This document shows positions 452 to 49,311 of a DNA stretch of 64,000 nt, one piece after another. Under the pieces are notes generated by a model, which saw nothing but the letters and a program-made list of their open reading frames with translations, ran no database searches and was not told the origin of the DNA. Within the stretch, counting starts at the first letter, position 1, and each line of letters opens with the position of its first letter. A program made the translations under genes and the position numbers. Origin of the DNA: Histomonas meleagridis 2922-C6/04-290x (Eukaryota; Protista; Parabasalia); the NCBI GenBank assembly GCA_020184695.1, contig JAANOX010000253.1, forward strand, positions 186,001 to 250,000, written 5' to 3'.

Positions 452-3179
452 TTATCCTTGTGAATCTTTTAATTTTATTATGTCGTCACATTTATGATGT
501 TGAATTTTGTCTGCAAATAATCGAATAATTTCTACATTTTTCTTTTCTGATGCTATCATAAGCGCTGTTTTATATGTTTATAAGTAATTCCAAATGTTTA
601 TATGAAATTTTATATTTTTTAAAAATATTTTAAATAAAACAAAAAAATATTTTTAGCATCGATATCAATATTCTCTTGTTCAAGAAGTAATTGAACTATT
701 TCTGTATGACCATTCCAAGATGCATCCATAAGTGCTGTATAAAATAATTTAAATAATTTCCAAATATTATTTTGAAATAAGAAATTATTAAAATAAATTT
801 TAAATAAAACAAATAAATATCTTTAGCATTTATATCAATTCCTTTTTGTTCAAGAAGTAATTTAACTATTTCTATATTACCTTTTTCAGATGCTTTCATA
901 AGTGCTGTTCTAAATAATTTAAATAATTTCCAAATATTATATTGATATCCAAAATTATTAAAATAAATATTAAATAAAAAAAAAAAATAAACTAAATAAA
1001 CAAATATCTTTACCATTGACATCAATTCCTTCATGTCCAAGAAGTAATTTAACGACATTAATTTTTTTTTTTTTTTAATTGCACAAATAAGTGATGTGTA
1101 AAATATTTTAGATAATTTCCAATTGTAATTTTGAAACCCAAAATTATTATAATAAATTTTAAATAAAACAAATAAATATCTTTTGCATTAATATCAATTC
1201 CTTCTTGTTCAAGAAGTAATTTAACTATTTCTGTATGACCATTTTCAGATGCTAATGTAAGTGCTGTATTAAATATTTTAGTTAATTTCCAAATTTTATA
1301 TTGAAATATCAAATTATCTAAATAAATACTAAATAAAACAAATAAATATTTTTAGCATTAATATCAATTCCTTTTTGTTCAAGAAGTAATTTAACTATTT
1401 CTGTGTGACCATTTTCAGATGCACAAATAAGAGCTGTTTTAAATATATCAAATAATTCCTAAATATTATTTTGAAATTTCAAAAAATTAGCATATATTTC
1501 AAACAAAAAAAATATAATTTGTCATTAGCGTTTTGACTAGCTTTTTTTTTCGAGAAAATCATATTGAAGATTCCACTGAAACCTTTGTCAAATGCATAAT
1601 CAAGTGCTATCCAAAATATGTTAGATAACTTGCAAATATTTCTTTGAAATACCAAATTAATAAAACAAAAATAAAACAATATTATTAAATATTTTGAGTA
1701 TTTGGATCATTTTCTTCTTGATCAAGAATCATTTTTACTATTTTTTCGTTACGGTTTTTGGTTGCAATTGTAATTGCTGTATCAAATCTTGAAAATAAAT
1801 TCCAAATATTATTTTGAAACATAAAATTATTACAACAAATTTTTAATAAAGCAAATGAATATCTTTAGGACTTATATCAATTCCATGTTCAAGAAGTAAC
1901 TTAATTAATGTTATATCATTATTTTTAGCGGCTGATATAAGTACTGTTTGAAATGTTTCAAACAATTTCCAAATATTATATTAAGATATTAAAAAATCAT
2001 TAAAAGAAAATCCAAATAAAACAAACAAATATTTTTAGCGTTAATGTCAATATCTTTTTGTTCCAAAATATATTTAACAAGTTCAATATTTTCCAAATAT
2101 GTATAGACTAATATATTCTTTGGGATTTGATTTAACTTCAATAAATCTTTAAGAATAAAAATATTTCCATACTTAACTGATTCTTTAAAAATATTTTCAT
2201 CAATTTTCATTCCTTCACTTAATAAGAATGAAAAAATCTCAAAGTTACAAGAACCAACACATTTTTTACCTAAATTGCTTAACTCATTTAAACTTGGTTT
2301 CTTATTTTGATATAAATAATGAAATATTTGGTTTTGATGATACTCAATTGCTATATAATAAAATCTTGGAAAAGGAACTTCATTCTTCTCACAATGATGA
2401 AATATTTCGATGTTTCCACCTGCAATTGCATATTTAATAGTTCTATCTGTTATAGAAGTATTTAACAACATAAATCTAAAACATTTAATCGATCCAAAAA
2501 ATGCTGCATAGTCAATAAGTGAAACATTCCAATTATCAAGAAATGAATATCTTTCATAAAGTGATGGTTCAAATTTTTGATCAAAATTAAATCCTCTTTT
2601 CATTGATATTTGTTGAAGTTTTTCAAGATCATCACTTCGTATAGCTTTTACAATTTCAGATGGATTTACTCCTTCATTAACTAATTGTTTATGTAATTTC
2701 CAATTGTTTTTGCTAAGTTTTTTTTCATTAGAAAGAAAATATTTAAATTTGTGACTCTCATCAATTTGTTCTGTCATATAATGTGCAAAATATGGTGTTA
2801 AAGTAAGTTTATATATAAAGTCAGGTTGAATCAATTTTCTTTCAACCATTTGATTGAGAATATAATTCGATTCACTTGAATCATAAATAATTAAAAATTG
2901 CTTAAATGTTTCGAAAATTTGAGGATTTGGTTTAAATTTTACTTCAATGTTTTCAACTTCTCTTAAAAATTCAAAATAAATATCAATATTTTTCTTCTTT
3001 GAAATAAAAGCAGAATAAATTAAATGAATAAGAATATTATTGAACGAATATGTTAAATCTTTATCATAATATTGTATAACTAATTGTGCATTATAACTAA
3101 CATTACTTTCATCTAAGTCAAAAACAATATGTTGAATGTTTTGAAGAATTTGTAAATATTGGAAGTTTTTGGAATCCAT
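452..3179 (-). CDS. Ankyrin-repeat protein (DUF3447-like N-terminal region plus about 10 C-terminal ankyrin repeats), interrupted by 37 17-nt elements; about 699 aa after their removal
   Basis: ORF 1989-3179 gives the N-terminal region (SLIDYAAFFGSIKCFRFM, IKYAIAGGNIEIFHHCE). Downstream 90-93 nt coding blocks read TALxxASENGHTEIVKLLLEQxGIDINAKD. Removing the 17-mers joins them to a TAA at 452-454. One residual frameshift remains at an A15 run (1062-1076). Confidence 0.8.
572..2030 (-). other. Nine clusters of 17-nt U-rich intervening elements separated by single-codon micro-exons (37 elements)
   Basis: Clusters at 1951-2030, 1784-1860, 1614-1690, 1441-1517, 1271-1347, 1101-1177, 912-1005, 742-818, 572-648. 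Example, sense strand: AAT|ATTTATTTGTTTTATTT|AGT|ATTTATTTAGATAATTT|GAT|ATTTCAATATAAAATTT|GGA|AATTAACTAAAATATTT|AAT ACA GCA CTT = N-S-D-G-N-T-A-L. Confidence 0.85.
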
Positions 3180-3309: not shown

Positions 3310-5361
3310 ATGGAAGTTGGAACTTTAACACCAGGAACTCATGTCGAAAACGAAGAGTGTTGCTATTGCTTTAACGACTACGATGGCCCAGATGGAGTCA
3401 ATATTTGCTTGCAATGCTTCACATGCTGCTGCAAGAAACATGCAATCCAACACATGAAAGAGAGACAACACACGACATTTCTCTCACGTAAGCGCATAAC
3501 AATCGAATCAGAAGCAGAGCCAACCAAACTCGCAATTGGTACAGATGGTGGATTTGGTAATGTGAAATATGAATATGAATTTCAAATTCGTATGTTTACT
3601 GAAGATGGTTACGAGGTATTACCAGAGGAAATGTTTGAGGGAGATGAAGAAGTTCAATCACTTATCAACAAACTTAAAGCTTCACCATCAATATCTACAC
3701 AAGACTTAGTCGAATCATGGGAACTTCAAATCGTTGAATGCCCTCACATCAAAAACCTTCAACAAGAGCCAAAAGAAAATCCGACAGTTCAAATGAAATG
3801 TGATGAATGTGAACTTTCCAATAATCTTTGGTTATGTCTTACTTGTGGTCATATCGGTTGTGGGCGACGTAACTTCGATGGTTCTGGTGGTAACAATCAT
3901 GCAGTTGATCATTTTGATCAAACACATCATCCAGTTTCAGTCAAACTTGGAACCATTTCGCCCGACGGTTCCGCCGATCTTTATTGTTATCAATGCGACG
4001 AGACCGTTACCGACTCCAAAATTTCGGAGCACCTCAAACCGTTTGGAATTGATGTTCAAACGTCACAGAAAACAGAGTCGACAACAACAGAACTTAACTT
4101 TGCGATCAATAAGGATTGGGATTTCTCTGCTGTCACAACAGACGGTAAAGAATTCGATAAACTTGAAGGGCCATTTTCAGTTGGGTTACGTAACTTAGGT
4201 AATACATGTTACATGAACTCAATTCTTCAACTTATTTCTCATATCCCATCATTTGTCGAAGAATTTTTGGTACCAAAAACAATGTCTAATTTACGATGGA
4301 CAGATCCAAAATGTCAATTCCGACGTCTATTTAAAGCAATGAGAAAAGGAAAATATAAATCAGTATCACCACGTATATTACGTTCTGTAATATGTCATGG
4401 TAATACACAATTCCTTAGTGCACGTCAACAAGATGCTGCCGAATTCTTCATGTATTTGTTTAATTATATTAAGGTACATTATCCACAAAGTTCATTAGTT
4501 AAATCAGAATTCGATGCAATACAAGTAATGAAATGTGATGAATGTGGTTGCGCTTCAACAATACCTATGAAGGATCAAGCATTTTTGGTATTAACTCCAT
4601 GTGTTGGAATTGTTACTAATAATGAAGAAGAAATTACTATCAAAATGGACGAACTTTTGGAAACAAGTTTCATACATATATATGAAGAACGTAAATGTGA
4701 TAAATGTAATCATGTCGGCGCAACTTCAATACAACAGATAAAGAATTTCCCAGAATATTTATTCGTATCTGTAATTCTCGATTCGACAAATGAAAAAGGA
4801 ATGGTACAAAAGATGAATATTAATATCGATATGGATCCAATGAATTTAGATTTAACAAAATATGAATGTACAGAACAAAAGGAAACTATTGATGAACAAA
4901 AAGTTAATGAATTAATGAATTTGGGATTTTCAAGAGCACAATGTGTTAGAGCTCTTCAAAATGTCGGAACCATCGAAGAGGCTGTTGATTGGATAGTATC
5001 AAATCCAATGGAACAAAGTCCAGCAGTACAACAAGTAATGGAAATGGGATTCACTGAAAGTGAAGCAAGAGAAGCATTAGAGGAATCATCTGGAAATATT
5101 GGATTAGCTATAGAATGGTTATTTGGACCAAGACAAAAGAAAGCTAAGGTTGAAAGATCAAATGGAAAAGGCATATATGAACTAATTGGTTTCGTACAAC
5201 ATAAAGGACCTTCTGCTTTATGTGGACATTATATTGCAAATGTTAAATTTGATGGAAAATGGATATTATATAATGATGAAAAAGTAGCTGTTTATCCAGA
5301 TGATTATCCACCACAATTTGGAAAGGGTTATCTGTACATGTACAGAAGAAAACAAGAGTAA
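3310..5361 (+). CDS. USP5: Ubiquitin carboxyl-terminal hydrolase, USP5/USP13/Ubp14 type
   Basis: ZnF-UBP (CDECELSNNLWLCLTCGHIGCGRRNFDGSGGNNHA), Cys box GLRNLGNTCYMNS, QQDAAEF, two UBA domains, His box HKGPSALCGHY. Confidence 0.92.
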   Translation: MEVGTLTPGTHVENEECCYCFNDYDGPDGVNICLQCFTCCCKKHAIQHMKERQHTTFLSRKRITIESEAEPTKLAIGTDGGFGNVKYEYEFQIRMFTEDGYEVLPEEMFEGDEEVQSLINKLKASPSISTQDLVESWELQIVECPHIKNLQQEPKENPTVQMKCDECELSNNLWLCLTCGHIGCGRRNFDGSGGNNHAVDHFDQTHHPVSVKLGTISPDGSADLYCYQCDETVTDSKISEHLKPFGIDVQTSQKTESTTTELNFAINKDWDFSAVTTDGKEFDKLEGPFSVGLRNLGNTCYMNSILQLISHIPSFVEEFLVPKTMSNLRWTDPKCQFRRLFKAMRKGKYKSVSPRILRSVICHGNTQFLSARQQDAAEFFMYLFNYIKVHYPQSSLVKSEFDAIQVMKCDECGCASTIPMKDQAFLVLTPCVGIVTNNEEEITIKMDELLETSFIHIYEERKCDKCNHVGATSIQQIKNFPEYLFVSVILDSTNEKGMVQKMNINIDMDPMNLDLTKYECTEQKETIDEQKVNELMNLGFSRAQCVRALQNVGTIEEAVDWIVSNPMEQSPAVQQVMEMGFTESEAREALEESSGNIGLAIEWLFGPRQKKAKVERSNGKGIYELIGFVQHKGPSALCGHYIANVKFDGKWILYNDEKVAVYPDDYPPQFGKGYLYMYRRKQE

Positions 5362-20630: not shown

Positions 20631-20922
20631 TTTTTTTTTTTGCTCTTGTACACTATCGGCAAAAGTGCAGGTACATTAAATCCCTATAGTTAAGACATTG
20701 TCGAACTTTAAAGGATAATAATTGAAGAGAATTGTTGTAATAAATTTACACGCTAAAAAAAATGTTAAGTTCAAAAACAATTTCATTTCTTATTATTTTT
20801 TTTTACTATATAATATTATATAGTATATAATATTATATAATAGTATATGATTATAATATATACTTTTTGGCGGGTTTTTTCCAATACAATCACAGACGTT
20901 TATAAATATTATTTCATATCAC

Positions 20923-21516
20923 ATGATTATTTCTTCTGGTTCCTCAACTCCAACTCCAGCGCGAACACCAACACCATTTAGAAAGAAAGTTTATAAAATA
21001 TGGGGTAATGCAAGTTTCCTTGAAAAAACATTTGTATATAGGATACTTGTAATCATCACAATTTTGTTTACAATTGTACTTATTAGCAACTTAATCCCTC
21101 ACTTTCCAGCTCAAATACAATTGATGGTGATGGGAGACGAACCAAAGAAGTGCAAAGATGCAATGTTGAATTTTGATGGAAAAGATTGTATCAGTCTTGA
21201 TATCGATCCTTTCACTGTAGGCAAAGAAGAAAGAAAAGAAATTGTAGCGCTTTACAAGAAAAATAAGGAAATTGATAACTATATCGATTTTTTAAAGATC
21301 CTTAATGAAAACCAAACTAAAATTGCAAAAGATATTCTTTTCCTTCATTGTGGTGTATATGTTGATCAAAATAATGGAAAATTTGTATCATCATACATAC
21401 CAATATCCACAAAATCTTTTTCAATTATTGTATTGATAATACTTATCATTTCAGCAAGTCTTTTAGTCTTGTCATATTTCATTCGCAAGGATGCCTGCGA
21501 AGCAAAAACAAAATAA
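20923..21516 (+). CDS. Hypothetical membrane protein with two transmembrane segments
   Basis: Intact 197-aa ORF with two hydrophobic helices flanking a Cys-containing loop. TCACA Inr-like motif directly upstream. Confidence 0.75.
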   Translation: MIISSGSSTPTPARTPTPFRKKVYKIWGNASFLEKTFVYRILVIITILFTIVLISNLIPHFPAQIQLMVMGDEPKKCKDAMLNFDGKDCISLDIDPFTVGKEERKEIVALYKKNKEIDNYIDFLKILNENQTKIAKDILFLHCGVYVDQNNGKFVSSYIPISTKSFSIIVLIILIISASLLVLSYFIRKDACEAKTK

Positions 21517-42481: not shown

Positions 42482-43180
42482 ATGAGTATGCCTCAATCCC
42501 CACGCCCAAGCTCAAGACAAAAGAAGACGGGGATAACAATTTTAGCTAACCAAAATCCAATAAAAAAACCTACAATTTCAGATCTTAGAAATGAGAAACA
42601 GATTCCTCGATCACCAAGAACATTTCAAAATGATAAACCAACAAGTGCCAGACAACAAACTCCAACTTTTGGCTCATCAGAGCAATTTAAAAAACCAACA
42701 ATATCAGATTTGAATAATATTAAATTTGATTTTAATGTAAACAAAAAAGAAGAACCAGGTTATAAACCATATACAATTGAAGAGTATAGAGAAATCCAAC
42801 AAATGGAAGATTTTAGTAGTAGAGGTGGACTTGGACCATCACTTGATGAAGAATGGGAAAGGAAGAAAGAAATGAGAACTCGACTTATGCAATTTGGGCA
42901 GCGAATAAAACAAGACAATAAAGCTAATGTTGTCAAGAGAGCCAAGCCAAGGAAGCCACCTCCAAAGCAACAAAGCAAAACTGATAAAATGAAGGAATAC
43001 GCAAACAGCATTCCAAAGCCAAAAATACATTCACGAGCAGGCGCTTCTAGGCCAAAGTCAAAACCGAAGGCGGATCCTGTTGTTGCAACATATGATATAG
43101 ATGCTGAGCTCCAGAGGCATCACCATTTCTCCGAAAGAATTAACTCATTTCGGAAATCACTTGCAAAATATTTAGATTAG
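42482..43180 (+). CDS. JHY-like flagellar/ciliary protein
   Basis: YKPYTIEEY..GGLGP..KMKEYANSIPKP..LQRHH pattern resembles the JHY C-terminal domain, from recall. Confidence 0.55.
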   Translation: MSMPQSPRPSSRQKKTGITILANQNPIKKPTISDLRNEKQIPRSPRTFQNDKPTSARQQTPTFGSSEQFKKPTISDLNNIKFDFNVNKKEEPGYKPYTIEEYREIQQMEDFSSRGGLGPSLDEEWERKKEMRTRLMQFGQRIKQDNKANVVKRAKPRKPPPKQQSKTDKMKEYANSIPKPKIHSRAGASRPKSKPKADPVVATYDIDAELQRHHHFSERINSFRKSLAKYLD

Positions 43181-43280
43181 ACTTTGTTTGTAGTTTTTTT
43201 AAATAAAAAAGGAATGCAATAGTTATCAACAAGCCTTGATTCAAACATTAAAAATTGGAATTTTGTTGACCGTTAATATA

Positions 43281-43994
43281 ATGACGAACGCTATAAAATC
43301 TTTCAAGAATAAAACACCTAAAAATACTGTTTACAGGGTCGGTGGAGATATTGTTAATGAGAAAATGCGCGCGGTTGCAATTTCAGATTGTCACTTTGGA
43401 AAAAATATAGCAATTACATCTTCGGTTCCAATATTCATAAAAAATATTCAGAAAATCATCCTTAAAGAAAAAGCAACTGTTTTATTTATACTTGGCGATA
43501 TTACACATATTAATTGTGGTGATGCACAAACCTATGCATATCTATTTGAAAACTTGAACCAATTTGGAATTCCAATTTTCGCAATCTCAGGAAATCATGA
43601 TAGAAGCATTAGTACCAAGTACGCCAAAATTATGCCAAAATATTCTAATGTACACATGGTCACAAGTGATTTATTAATAAAACTTACACATCCAAATCCA
43701 AAACCTGGAGAAATATCAAACCTATACATGACTCACGACCTTGGTGAACCTCTTCGACTTACTCGAACACAATGCAAATCTTACATGTTAGCACTTAAGC
43801 AAGTTAATTCGAATGTCATTGGTGCAGAAGATTATCTTCTTACAGGACATACACATGAATGCGTTGAAGTTCCTGATGAACGATGCTCATGTTTGAAACC
43901 GATGTCAGTTGATTTAAATTTCTTCGGATATGCATTGATCACTGCTGAGAACGGATTTGTTGTACAACATTTTGATGATGCCCGATTACATTAA
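43281..43994 (+). CDS. Calcineurin-like metallophosphoesterase
   Basis: ISDCHFG, LGDI, SGNHD, THD, TGHTH motifs in canonical order. Confidence 0.85.
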   Translation: MTNAIKSFKNKTPKNTVYRVGGDIVNEKMRAVAISDCHFGKNIAITSSVPIFIKNIQKIILKEKATVLFILGDITHINCGDAQTYAYLFENLNQFGIPIFAISGNHDRSISTKYAKIMPKYSNVHMVTSDLLIKLTHPNPKPGEISNLYMTHDLGEPLRLTRTQCKSYMLALKQVNSNVIGAEDYLLTGHTHECVEVPDERCSCLKPMSVDLNFFGYALITAENGFVVQHFDDARLH

Positions 43995-44550
43995 TAAAAA
44001 AATTATTAAAATTATTAAAATGTGCATGTTTAAATTGAGCATTTTATTATTATAGATTCTAAATTTTTGATATTTGGATTATCACAAGTCTCAAAATCAA
44101 TTCAATTTCATGAAATGGTGTTAATGAAAATTGTTTGTCTGGTTTTTCAAAAAAATATTATTAATTAGCACATAAAATCATGTAAAATTATTAAATATTT
44201 TGGTACTTAACTAAATTATGATATAACTCTAATATTTTCGAAATTTATATCTATTGTAGATTCAGAAAGTTTAAGTTTTAACTTCAAAAATAATTTATCA
44301 ACTATCATAAAAATGATATTTTCTGTAATAATCAAACACGATGTCATTATGATGAAGATTGATATAATCAAAATCTAAAAATATTGATTATTCGTTTAGA
44401 AAAATGGGTGCTACAGTATTCTATATATTTTATGAGGGTTCATTTTTCAGATAAGTTTGTCACAGATACTCGGGAAATTATATATTTATTTTTATTAGAA
44501 AATGTGTGTCTATTAAAATAAATTTTTTTTGTAGATTTTTATTCATTAAA

Positions 44551-47090
44551 TTATTTTGTTCCTTTTGCCTTGAATTGATTAAGCAAGTTTATGGTTTCCT
44601 TATTTTTACTTTGATTTGCTATTTCAAATACAGTCCAAATTAATTTTAATGAACACCAAATAATATGAGTAAACTCTCCAAAATGGTATTAATGAACATC
44701 CCTTAAAGTTAAATCAATTCCATCTTGTTCAAGAAGTATTTTGATAATATCATTTCGATTAAAGAAGGTAGCCCACATTAAAGAAGACCAAAATAATCAT
44801 AAAAAACTCCAAATTCATTAAATAAACATGAAAAATTCTCAATAAACTTGAAACTCATTAAAAAGACATTTGTCATATTAATTTGAATATCTTTAATTTT
44901 CAGGAGGCACTTAACGATATCTAAAAATCCGCGTGAGCAAGCAAGCATTAGAGCTGTCAAGAATATAATAAATAAACGTCAAAAAGTATGAATAATAAAC
45001 ATGAAAAATTTCCATTAAACATGAAAAAATATAAAAAAATGTCTTTTGCATTTATATCAAAATCATCGTTTTCTATTATAAATTTAATAGTTTCAACATT
45101 TCCTGATCCAGCAGCATAAGGTAATATGTCACGAGGCATTTTTCTTTTTGCATTAAGATATTTTAATAAAATTGTATTTCCCATTCTTGCTGCTTGCTTA
45201 TGCATACCTTCATCTATTGGTGAACCAGATTCTAAAGATGTATATAAATCAAAGTTAAAATACAATATTGATTTGATCAATAAATTTGTTACACCTATAA
45301 AATTGCCTAAATTGTTTTGTGTTATATAAATTAATAAATCTCTTTGATTATATTCAACTGCAGTTTCATAAGCTAAATCAAAAGTTGAATTATTTTGTTC
45401 ACATAAATGAAAGATTTGAACATTTCCACCTGCTATTGCAAATCTAGCAGTATCTTTTACATCACCACCATTTTGTAATAAAAATCTAAAACATTTAATT
45501 GCACCATAGAAAGCAGCATAATTAATAAGTGAAATTTTATCGCCATCAACTATTGTACATCTTTCATATACTGAAGGTGGAATCATTTGATTAAAATCAA
45601 ACCCAATATTTGATGATATATTCTGAAGTTTTTCAACTTCATCATTTCGAATTATTGTAGCAATTTCATTTGGATTAACACCTTCAGAAACATATTTCTT
45701 ATGAAGAGCCCAATTATCTTTTGAAAGTTTCTCATAATCATTGAAAAATGCTTTAGATTTTGCATTAGAATAAGATTTCAGCTTTTGTATTTCTTCTGGT
45801 GTTTTATAGTGTATAAAATATAAGTTTGAAATATCATTTGTGAATTCTTTTTGAAGCAAGTTTTGGTCTATCAATTTTTGGATCAGATAATTAGATTCAC
45901 AACTATAAGAAGAGTTTCTTAAAATATTTGCAAACATATTAAAAATGTCAATTTCACTATCAAATTCTTTCTGGATCGCATCAATTTGCTTTAGGAAATT
46001 GAAATAAATATTAAAATCATTTCTTCTTACTACAAAAGATTGAAGAACTAAATTACATATGACCCAATGATATGAATATTTCATAGGTGGATAATAGAAA
46101 CCCATAGTATATTTTGCTGTTTCTATAATGTTTTCTTCATTTAATGAGAAAATGTATTTATGTAATGGGACTAAAATTTCATTAACATCATTAGAATATC
46201 TCATAATACCAGTTACAGGTTTACTTTGTTCTGGCTGATTTGGAATTGATTCGCCAAATAATAAAAATAAACTCTTGCATTGATATCAACGCCTTTTAGA
46301 GAAGCAAGTAATTCTGCGATATCGTCATTTCCATTTTTGATTGCTTCTATAAGAGAAGTATTAAATATTCCAAAAATACTCCAAATATTTAAATAAAACA
46401 TTAAATAATTAAACTAAATATTGAAATTAGAAAATTAATATTTTTAACATTAAAATCAATTCCTTTGCATTTAACAAGAAATTCAACAACTTCTAAATAA
46501 CCTTCTCTTGATGCCATTAGAAGAACAGTTTCATATAAACTAAATAAACTCCATAAATAAGAAATGAAACTTGTTTACATTAAAATAAATATTAAAAAAA
46601 TGAAAAAAATATTTCTGATATTGATATTAATCCCTTCTTTGTTAGCAAGAACCTTTAATATTTCAATGTGGCCGCATTCATATGAATATATAAGAGCTGA
46701 ATTAATAAAAATATAATAACACCAAATAATCATAAAAAACATCAATTGCCAAAAAGATACATTAAAAACTATATTAAAACATCTTTTGCATTCAAGTCAA
46801 TTCCAGCTTTGTCGATAAGTAGTTTAACAATTGGCAAGTGACCTTTTTGTGATGCCACGATTAAGGCTGTTTTAAGCATTCTTAAATAACTCCAAAAACA
46901 TGAAATAGACTCTCTATAACGAAAACAAACATCAAAACCTTTAAATATATGTTCTTATTGTTGATGTCGATCCCTTTTTGCTTGAGGAAAAACTTGACAA
47001 AATCAACTTGACCATTAAGAGATGCTTTAATTAGAGCATCAAATGGTAGAAAAAATTTGCACTGACTTGCATATTAACTTTGGATTGCAT
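44551..47090 (-). CDS. Single ankyrin-repeat gene (5 ankyrins, linker, DUF3447-like region, C-terminal ankyrins) interrupted by 29 elements; 681 aa after their removal
   Basis: 2540 nt minus 28x17 minus 1x18 = 2046 nt = 682 codons with no internal stop, from ATG 47090 to TAA 44553-44551. This joins ORF-track fragments 46213-46401, 44957-46204 and 44778-44960. Confidence 0.85.
44638..47057 (-). other. 29 17-nt (one 18-nt) U-rich intervening elements: seven clusters and two singletons
   Basis: Singletons at 47041-47057 and 46256-46272. Clusters at 46874-46950, 46704-46780, 46533-46610, 46363-46439, 44961-45040, 44791-44867, 44638-44697. Example: GAT|GTTTTAATATAGTTTTT|AAT|GTATCTTTTTGGCAATT|GAT|GTTTTTTATGATTATTT|GGT|GTTATTATATTTTTATT|AAT TCA GCT CTT = D-N-D-G-N-S-A-L. 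Confidence 0.85.
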
Positions 47091-47662
47091 CTAAAAATTA
47101 TAATTTCTTAACGTAGGTTTTGCCAAAATATTTGGGGGATGTTCTCTTTTTGAAATGTCAAAAATTTATCGATTGAATAGTGAATATTCACAAAATTTGA
47201 GTAAGTTGGCAAAAGAAGATAAACGGTTATCATGGTTTGTTTTTTGGCAAAAATTGATTCAAGGCATGAAATTAGGTCTAATCCTTATCACTGAGCAACA
47301 ATAAGAAGATACGAAAAAAGGGCTAATCAAGCGTGTTACTCATTGGTTTATTTTATAATAGAAAAAGTTTTCAAACTAATTCTAGAATTTTATATGAATA
47401 ATCATTTTGCAAATATTGTAACCGCAATGCAAGGTATAAATTTATACCTTATTTCTCTGGCACAAGATAAAAATCAAATGAAAGATAATTTGATTCCACA
47501 AAATAACAAAAAGCCAAATAATAAAAAAGCCTATCGTTAACTTATAATGTGAGTTAATATTGCTAATCGTTGATTTATTTAGGATTGTTTCCTTTGCAAG
47601 GGAAAACTAAAATTTTGGCGCCAATTTTTCACTTGACATTTCATTGTAATTCGGGCACTGTA

Positions 47663-48970
47663 ATGTCGCAATCTGGCGCTATCTTATGCCCAATTTGCTA
47701 CAACCCAATTGCAAATGAAGGAGAGCATAGGATTTGCGCACTTAAACCATGTGGACATTTGTTTTGCCATTCATGTATTTGTCAATCAATTAAAGTCAAA
47801 AAAGAATGTCCTCTTTGTAGACGAAAAGTTACACAAAAAGATATACTTCCATTAGTTTGGGATTCCACCCTTCCAGTGAGTCAAGAATCACTTTCTAAAT
47901 TGTATTCAGATTCTGAAGATTTTATATTATTGAGGGAACAGTTAGCAAAAAAAGAATTCGAATGCAAAAGATTAAAGGAAGCAATAAATTCAATTTTAGT
48001 TAATAATTCTCTTAGGAAAAATCCTTCTATTATTTTTGAAAAAGAAATGCATGATTCATTTCGAATGTGTTTAGCAGACTCTTGTATAGTTACAACAAGC
48101 CATGAAAACAAATCATATGGCGTCAATTTCACAAAACTAACAGATTTTACATCTTCGAGATTTACATCTCTACACAAGTTTGATATAAAAGATGTTCAGC
48201 CATGTGATGGCTTTACTCATGTTGCTTCGGTTTCACTTGACAAATCGTTGTGTATTACAAATGTTAAATCTCAAAGTATTTCTAGTCAATACAATTTTGA
48301 TGAACCTCTCTTCAGTTGTAAGCCCATTCGGGATTCCATAATTGCTATTGGTGGAAATCATGGAAAATTATATATTTATGATTCACGTGAAAATAATCAT
48401 AACATTTTTCAAACAGATCCTGGTCCTCCCATAACTTCTATATCGTCGCTTGGTGTCTATAAGCTTCTTGTAATGACTCCTCAAAAAACAAAATATTTTG
48501 ATATTCGTAATACAGAATTTGAAGAAACTTCATTACCAGGTGGTCATTTTATATGTAATAGCGAAACTGATCATAAGTTTGTTATGCTCTCTAGGACGCC
48601 TCCTAATACATCGAAGTCCTCTTTTTTCAGGTACGACGATAATGGAAATCTGACACTTGTAGGGGAAAAAATTAGCCCTTACTTTCAAAAGATGGGGCGC
48701 CCCTATTTGGTATCATACAATCAGAATAGTTTTTATGCTTTGCCTAATGAAAAAACAAATAATTTTGAGCTTTATTGCTTTAATAATCTTAACAAAGATT
48801 TATGGGGTAAATATAAAAGTTTTTTTCTTCACTCTGAACATCCATCGCCAATTCTCGACCTTATAATGACTAAAACAGAAAATGATATGAACATATTTAC
48901 ACTGTCATCTAAACTTTTGCGGGTATTCTCAGTCCCTTGGATTAACACTCAGTTTGTTGATTTATATTAA
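47663..48970 (+). CDS. RFWD3: RING finger plus WD40 E3 ubiquitin ligase, RFWD3-like
   Basis: CPICYNPIANEGEHRICALKPCGHLFCHSCI..CPLC, short coiled coil, WD40-like region including LHKFDIKDV. Confidence 0.7.
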   Translation: MSQSGAILCPICYNPIANEGEHRICALKPCGHLFCHSCICQSIKVKKECPLCRRKVTQKDILPLVWDSTLPVSQESLSKLYSDSEDFILLREQLAKKEFECKRLKEAINSILVNNSLRKNPSIIFEKEMHDSFRMCLADSCIVTTSHENKSYGVNFTKLTDFTSSRFTSLHKFDIKDVQPCDGFTHVASVSLDKSLCITNVKSQSISSQYNFDEPLFSCKPIRDSIIAIGGNHGKLYIYDSRENNHNIFQTDPGPPITSISSLGVYKLLVMTPQKTKYFDIRNTEFEETSLPGGHFICNSETDHKFVMLSRTPPNTSKSSFFRYDDNGNLTLVGEKISPYFQKMGRPYLVSYNQNSFYALPNEKTNNFELYCFNNLNKDLWGKYKSFFLHSEHPSPILDLIMTKTENDMNIFTLSSKLLRVFSVPWINTQFVDLY

Positions 48971-49311
48971 TTTTGTTTGTAATAAATTTTCGATTTTAAA
49001 TTTTTTGTTTTTATATTTTTTTAAATCAATTTGTCGTTTTTCAAAATCATATTATGAATTATTCATCCAAAATTGATTGCATCATAATTATTTTTTGTTG
49101 TAATCTAAATATCTTCATTTGTATATAAAATAATAAATGCACATTAGAAATTGTAAATATGTTAAATTGATTTTAAATAATGACAAATTGAGTATTTTTT
49201 CACTGTGAAGAAAAATTGTTATCAATTTTTATTAAAACAAATAGTGTTAAACATTTCAAAATTTTGATCTTTAAATCACAAAAATTTGTATTTGAATCAT
49301 TTTACTTATAA

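Follow-up and report, generated by a model that had tools for sequence, protein, structure and literature searches.

An ankyrin-repeat gene of the AT-rich parabasalid parasite Histomonas meleagridis has each loop between repeats written one codon at a time between 17-nt T-rich elements, and public RNA data have revealed that 28 of the 29 proposed elements are cut out of the transcript, although the elements fit no described intron class by the features that could be tested. The gene is located on the minus strand, at positions 47090-44551 of a 64,000-nt stretch (the window) of contig JAANOX010000253.1 (positions 186,001 to 250,000, assembly GCA_020184695.1). No description of this layout was found in the literature searched.

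Gene reconstruction and RNA evidence

Nine stretches that translate as ankyrin helices or as a central DUF3447-like domain were found in different reading frames, separated by spacers of 80, 80, 81, 80, 17, 83, 80 and 63 nt. When printed in steps of 20 nt, the spacers resolved into 17-nt T-rich pieces alternating with single codons, with one piece of 18 nt and two micro-exons of 6 nt. Masking of the 29 elements (28 of 17 nt and one of 18 nt) removed 494 of the 2540 nt, and the remaining 2046 nt were read as 681 codons followed by the only stop, in agreement with the earlier note, which had claimed this arithmetic and seven rebuilt hairpins that were all confirmed. A profile search with Pfam aligned each exon of about 31 codons to Ank profile positions 3-32, and therefore the three isolated codons supply positions 33, 1 and 2, with Gly at the conserved position 2. 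A Gly codon precedes the last element in 6 of 7 hairpins of this gene and in 7 of 9 hairpins of a second ankyrin locus of the window (452-2030, locus 2), which gives the 13 of 16 counted in the earlier note. The families Ank, Ank_2, Ank_3, Ank_4 and Ank_5 matched the exons above cut-off, whereas DUF3447 scored 23.4 bits in the central exon, below its cut-off of 26.9.

Table of the features of the ankyrin gene (positions of the window, minus strand)
Position	Feature	Micro-exon codons (residues)	Evidence
44551-47090	Whole ankyrin/DUF3447-family gene as proposed: 9 larger exons, 19 micro-exons (3 or 6 nt) and 29 elements		ORF arithmetic; Pfam Ank, Ank_2-5, weak DUF3447; paralogues, best named hit Tritrichomonas foetus TRFO_22173
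47050-47066	Proposed 5'-most element e0 (GTCAGTGCAAATTTTTT), needed to link ATG 47090 to the first repeat		Not removed in RNA contigs: X8-27 and X5-21 are colinear over 46951-47174 and 46951-47123; matrix score 2.5 (median 10.8)
46874-46950	Cluster h1, four 17-nt elements (46950-34, 46930-14, 46910-894, 46890-74)	GAT, AGA, GGA	X8-27 has 102 nt for 46781-46950 (68 nt missing); kept letters not listed
46704-46780	Cluster h2, four 17-nt elements	AAT, GAT, GGT (N-D-G)	Joint 46704>46781 in X8, letters CCATCATT (reverse complement AATGATGG)
46533-46610	Cluster h3, elements of 17, 17, 18 and 17 nt	AAT, CAA, GGA ((N)-Q-G)	Joint 46532>46610 in X8, letters TCCTTGAT (reverse complement ATCAAGGA)
46363-46439	Cluster h4, four 17-nt elements	AAT, AAT, GGA	Joint 46362>46434 in X4 and X8, letters TCC (GGA); the two AAT codons absorbed into the flank with 1 mismatch
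46256-46272	Lone 17-nt element GTTTATTTTTATTATTT, joining the last N-terminal repeat (...DINAR) to the central domain		17 letters left out at 46255 in X4 (9.85 of 9.85) and X8 (20.9 of 20.9), 0 of 532 in DNA run X1
45041-46255	Central uninterrupted exon (DUF3447-like region with degenerate, uninterrupted ankyrin repeats)		38% identical to the central ORF of locus 2
44961-45040	Cluster h6, four 17-nt elements	CAT, CAT, TTTGAC (H-H-F-D)	Joint 44961>45041 in X4 and X8, letters TCAAAATGATG (reverse complement CATCATTTTGA)
44791-44867	Cluster h7, four 17-nt elements	CAA, CAT, GGA (Q-H-G)	Joint 44790>44868 in X4 and X8, letters TCCATGTTG (reverse complement CAACATGGA)
44638-44697	Cluster h8, three 17-nt elements	TGGAGA (two-codon micro-exon), GGT (W-R-G)	Joint 44638>44698 in X4, letters CCTCTCCA (reverse complement TGGAGAGG)

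Contigs from one public DNA run (X1) and three RNA runs (X4, X5 and X8) of the same organism were compared with positions 43100-49000. The DNA contigs (X1-1, X1-7 and X1-8) were colinear with the window through every cluster, and no DNA contig showed a joined form. In contrast, contigs from two independent RNA samples (X4 and X8) skipped 28 of the 29 elements and kept the predicted micro-exon letters, although for cluster h1 only the arithmetic is available. The RNA contig X4-11 (1192 nt) covers 44275-45653 and lacks 187 nt (11 x 17) between 44639 and 45040, whereas X8-27 (1246 nt) lacks 273 nt (68+69+68+68) between 46363 and 46950. The lone 17-mer was also missing in X8-27 and in X4-12. The RNA pieces match the window without mismatches, which indicates that they come from this locus and not from a paralogue. 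In addition, RNA depth over the intergenic stretch 44085-44281 was 0-1.8 against about 560 in DNA, so that the RNA runs are not DNA-contaminated. Run X5 contained only unspliced, low-depth contigs of this gene and unprocessed transcripts therefore exist, although they cannot be quantified from contigs.

The inference of the earlier note that these elements reflect a functional processing rule rather than decay is supported by these data, except at the first element. The 5'-most element was retained in the only contigs that cover it, its matrix score is at the bottom of the range, and its position is not fixed by ORF logic, because any 17-nt removal in a short interval near the start, for example that of GTTAATATGCAAGTCAG a few bases upstream, would also restore the frame. 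Without some such removal the first repeat has no in-frame ATG. Considering that the contigs have no direction and may merge an overlapping transcript, this element is unconfirmed rather than refuted, and the single perfect 681-aa ORF claimed in the earlier note is not shown at its 5' end.

Sequence features and relatives of the elements

A 17-nt weight matrix built from the elements found 23 hit pairs spaced exactly 20 nt apart on the minus strand, all of them inside the two ankyrin loci, with 1 pair on the plus strand and none in three Markov shuffles. A scan for 17-nt pieces whose removal would join long ORFs elsewhere in the window revealed no excess over control lengths of 14, 20 and 23 nt, the candidates being GC-rich and unlike the elements. 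The neighboring genes, which include BRCA2-like, PEPCK, an XPD-type helicase and a RING-WD40 protein, are plain uninterrupted ORFs.

Sixty elements of 17 nt were pooled, 28 from this locus, 20 from five clean clusters of locus 2 and 12 from the gut-metagenome scaffold L003. The consensus is R-TTT-N9-A-TTT, with a purine at +1 in 59 of 60 elements, T at +2 to +4, T in the last three bases and A at -4 in 43 of 60. Position +1 is G in 22 of 28 elements of this locus, but A in 18 of 20 in locus 2 and in 9 of 12 in L003, whereas the last base is almost always T, whichever purine comes first. A GT start was found in 22/28, 1/20 and 3/12 elements, respectively. Counting the single 18-nt element, 1 of 61 ends in AG, and none contains the trichomonad branch motif ACTAA(C). 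The 12-nt trichomonad 3' motif was not enriched in the window (2 hits against 2.9 expected). The cut boundaries can slide by at most 1 nt and only the register R-T...TT is allowed at all sites, so there is no hidden GT-AG register and no microhomology for template switching. A canonical single intron per spacer is impossible, because the RNA keeps 8-12 dispersed letters per cluster and the clusters hold almost no AG. Seven clusters folded no better than shuffled sequences (z from -1.6 to +1.6), with no helix recurring at the boundaries, and nothing was found by Rfam in the window. The model holds only about 8.7 bits, and look-alikes occur in sense orientation inside intact ORFs (37 at the low threshold and 1 above the median in 36 kb), so that sequence alone may not explain the specificity. 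No element is 14, 20 or 23 nt long, although these lengths would shift the frame equally, which points to a physical ruler rather than to frame selection.

The best named homologue of the central domain was T. foetus TRFO_22173, and homologues carry PF11929 (DUF3447). Two gut-metagenome scaffolds carry paralogue-level relatives. L003 shows three clusters with the same 17/3/17/3/17/3/17 layout, which is independent DNA evidence, and L001 breaks off right after a DAKD codon at its contig end, where an AT-starting T-rich piece begins. The claim of the earlier note that spacer sequence drifts while length and position are conserved also holds for this locus, since its elements show 51-54% identity (0.54 between the two window loci) against 44% expected from composition, only the ends R-TTT and (A)TTT being kept. 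However, drift is not universal, because between locus 2 and L003 the elements are 76% identical, which equals codon positions 1+2 (76%) and exceeds position 3 (61%), and the third element, ATTTCAAAATAATATTT, is often identical although the central domains are only 46% identical. In T. foetus the annotated protein stops exactly at a hairpin, and ankyrin helices continue downstream in other frames after T-rich spacers of 28, 66 and about 80 nt. When a transcript-derived longer protein was looked for, only the annotated 502-aa model was obtained, and the T. foetus case therefore remains a lead.

Possible excision mechanisms

The data are best explained by considering the elements as true intervening sequences, present in the DNA and cut out of the transcript, with the single codons between them kept and joined, so that the mature mRNA encodes normal ankyrin beta-hairpins. 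It is inferred that each element is an autonomous unit defined by a purine-TTT start, an (A)TTT end and a strict 17-nt length, and the clusters probably spread by duplication of ankyrin repeats together with their elements. Although no lariat, snRNA or inhibitor evidence is available, a spliceosome working at its lower size limit with relaxed end recognition is slightly favored, with no more than even confidence. Nuclear mRNA excision is overwhelmingly spliceosomal, the GT-T-T start in this locus fits the GT-[A/T]-[C/T] start of the 23-25 nt, otherwise poly-T, type B introns of Trichomonas vaginalis (PMC12316389), and narrow length classes at 15-21 nt appear to be typical of minimal spliceosomal introns in Stentor and in chlorarachniophyte nucleomorphs. 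Against this reading, 60 of 61 elements do not end in AG, the branch motif is missing, and the A that predominates at +1 in locus 2 and L003 has no matching change of the last base, which differs from the G..G/A..C pairing of the first and last bases in U2 and U12 introns. Excision by a dedicated non-spliceosomal endonuclease-ligase, either a ruler enzyme or a guide-dependent complex that recognizes R-UUU...A-UUU in single-stranded RNA and rejoins the flanks, is tentative but nearly as likely. This alternative is favored by these same missing signals, by the exact length, by the restriction to one gene family in this window and by the tandem 3-nt exons, which no described spliceosomal system handles in series. 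Nevertheless, no known enzyme cuts unstructured mRNA in this way, and tRNA-type and IRE1-type splicing need helices or stem-loops. It is possible that the elements are a new non-spliceosomal intron class removed by a length-measuring system that tolerates single-codon exons, and because the codons set apart are the tip residues of the ankyrin binding loop, such a system might also allow codon-by-codon alternative inclusion and so vary binding surfaces.

Other explanations are very unlikely. A decayed pseudogene with spliced-looking RNA coming from an uninterrupted retro-copy or paralogue could be considered because the ankyrin family is very large, with depth bins reaching 10^4-10^5 from paralogous contigs, but the RNA contigs match this locus with 0 other letters over pieces of 364-724 nt, the whole DNA run X1 shows 0 contigs with any of the joined forms, and all 28 removals restore the frame. 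Artefacts of reverse-transcriptase template switching or of assembly might be suspected in a repeat-rich gene, and non-canonical junctions with lengths of 93/186/279 nt, multiples of about one ankyrin repeat and rarely spliced, are listed in Giardia ankyrin genes (PMC10711314) and are probably artefacts of this kind. However, the skipped pieces described here are 17 nt and not repeat-length, the boundaries lack the microhomology required, and the same joints with the same kept letters occur in two samples and are the dominant assembled form. Translational bypassing, as in T4 gene 60 or the mitochondrial byp elements of Magnusiomyces, might be suggested by short inserts without splice signals sitting between codons and by the unspliced contigs of run X5, but it is contradicted by the absence of the elements from X4-11, X4-12 and X8-27, there are no matching take-off and landing codons, and four hops within 80 nt are implausible. 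Germline-limited DNA elements of the ciliate type do not fit either, because every element is kept in the DNA contigs of X1.

Comparison with known systems and significance

Type B introns of T. vaginalis and T. stableri (23-28 nt; PMC12316389) share with these elements the phylum, a very short and near-fixed length and a poly-T body, but they always have GT/AG ends and a (T/A)CTAA branch site fused to the 3' end, number one (rarely two) per gene in 63-81 intron-containing genes per genome, and are flanked by ordinary-sized exons, whereas up to 29 elements per gene with 3-nt exons between them are found here. All 63 T. vaginalis introns are GT/AG, at least 23 nt long and single per gene. The minimal introns of Stentor (15-16 nt) and of chlorarachniophyte nucleomorphs (18-21 nt) are also AT-rich and many per gene, but they seem to keep GT...AG ends and a branch A, to occur in all kinds of genes and not to form tandem arrays split by single codons. 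With respect to U12-type introns (/ATATCC 5' motif, TCCTTAAC branch site, AC or AG end), the AT-starting elements read ATTT..., end in TTT and have no branch motif. Group I and group II introns require a conserved catalytic structure of hundreds of nt. Euglenid non-conventional introns and Fritillaria non-GT-AG introns are likewise removed efficiently from nuclear mRNA, but they are apparently larger and variable in length, without a 17-nt ruler or single-codon exons, and those of euglenids probably rely on pairing of the intron ends, which is not predicted here. Bulge-helix-bulge tRNA introns and HAC1/XBP1 introns (26 nt in XBP1) are short and non-GT-AG, but probably occur once per RNA and need defined structures at both cuts. 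Micro-exons of animals and plants, down to 3 nt and below, are spliced precisely (PMC7821500, PMC8831610), but they are isolated, flanked by long canonical introns and dependent on enhancer factors.

In the published Histomonas genome (43 Mb, 28% GC, two strains sequenced in 2021; PMC8529796) introns are reported as scarce, at most one per gene, and neither ankyrin genes nor such elements are mentioned, whereas in recent T. foetus and T. musculus genome papers predicted introns are treated as unvalidated or only counted. If confirmed at the bench, the elements would be the shortest non-GT-AG nuclear intron class known and the only known case, to the best of present knowledge, in which exons one codon long stand in series. 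It would show that accurate mRNA splicing can work with about 9 bits of sequence signal plus a fixed length, which bears on how splice sites are defined at the physical lower limit of the spliceosome or reveals a separate excision machinery. As a practical consequence, ankyrin genes of Histomonas, and probably of Tritrichomonas, are mis-annotated as fragments or truncated proteins, and gene counts, proteomic databases and family analyses for these parasites therefore need correcting.

Ankyrin loci in the window, in Tritrichomonas foetus and in gut metagenomes

A second ankyrin/DUF3447 gene was found in the window, with a central ORF followed by nine clusters of elements. Most of the elements of this gene start with AT or AA instead of GT, and the third element is nearly constant (ATTTCAAAATAATATTT). 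The central domain of this second gene is 38% identical to that of the ankyrin gene under study. In T. foetus, the annotated protein encoded by TRFO_22173 ends exactly at an ankyrin hairpin, and further ankyrin helices follow in other frames after T-rich spacers of 28, 66 and about 80 nt. T. foetus probably shares the design and the gene model is truncated. Independent metagenomic DNA (scaffolds L003 and L001) carries the same 17/3/17/3/17/3/17 clusters after ...K-D codons, with elements that are 76% identical to those of the second ankyrin gene of the window, although the central domains are only 46% identical. This suggests constraint on, or gene conversion of, the element sequences.

Features of the window and of other DNA sequences, with their coordinates
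Sequence	Coordinates	Strand	Feature
Window	452-3179	minus	Second ankyrin/DUF3447 gene
Window	1989-3179	minus	Central ORF of the second gene
Window	20857-21513	+	Intact ORF with a sense-strand 17-mer
Window	35000-63000		Neighbouring genes, single uninterrupted ORFs
Window	44698-47123		Unspliced contigs of RNA run X5
Window	47050-47066		Stretch through which contigs run unspliced
Window	47105-47570		Region between the two divergent genes
Window	from 47105		RNA contig X5-22
Window	47276-47540		RNA contig X8-28
Window	47312-47540		RNA contig X4-13
T. foetus MLAK01000650.1 (L002)	3961-4400		End of the annotated protein of gene TRFO_22173 and further ankyrin helices
ENA gut-metagenome scaffolds ERZ28614869, ERZ28615139	L003 1556-2098 and the end of L001		Clusters of elements

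RNA contigs in and next to the ankyrin gene

Only unspliced, low-depth contigs of the ankyrin gene were found in RNA run X5, while runs X4 and X8 contain the processed form. This could mean sample-dependent processing or simply pre-mRNA at low expression, and no ratio can be given because contig depths are inflated by paralogous words. The region between the two divergent genes is also covered by RNA contigs from the three runs (X5-22, X8-28 and X4-13), and there is therefore an unannotated or long 5' transcript here, which may explain why the contigs run unspliced through the stretch listed in the table.

Element-like sequence and neighbouring genes

One intact ORF of the window contains a sense-strand 17-mer (GTTTATAAATATTATTT) that scores above the median of true elements, which constitutes a natural test of whether sequence and length alone trigger excision. 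The neighbouring genes, which include those encoding PEPCK-GTP, a PALP enzyme, a metallophosphatase, RING-WD40, a ubiquitin-UBA protein, a DEAD_2 helicase and a BRCA2-like protein with BRC repeats, are uninterrupted. In this window, the interruption is specific to ankyrin genes.
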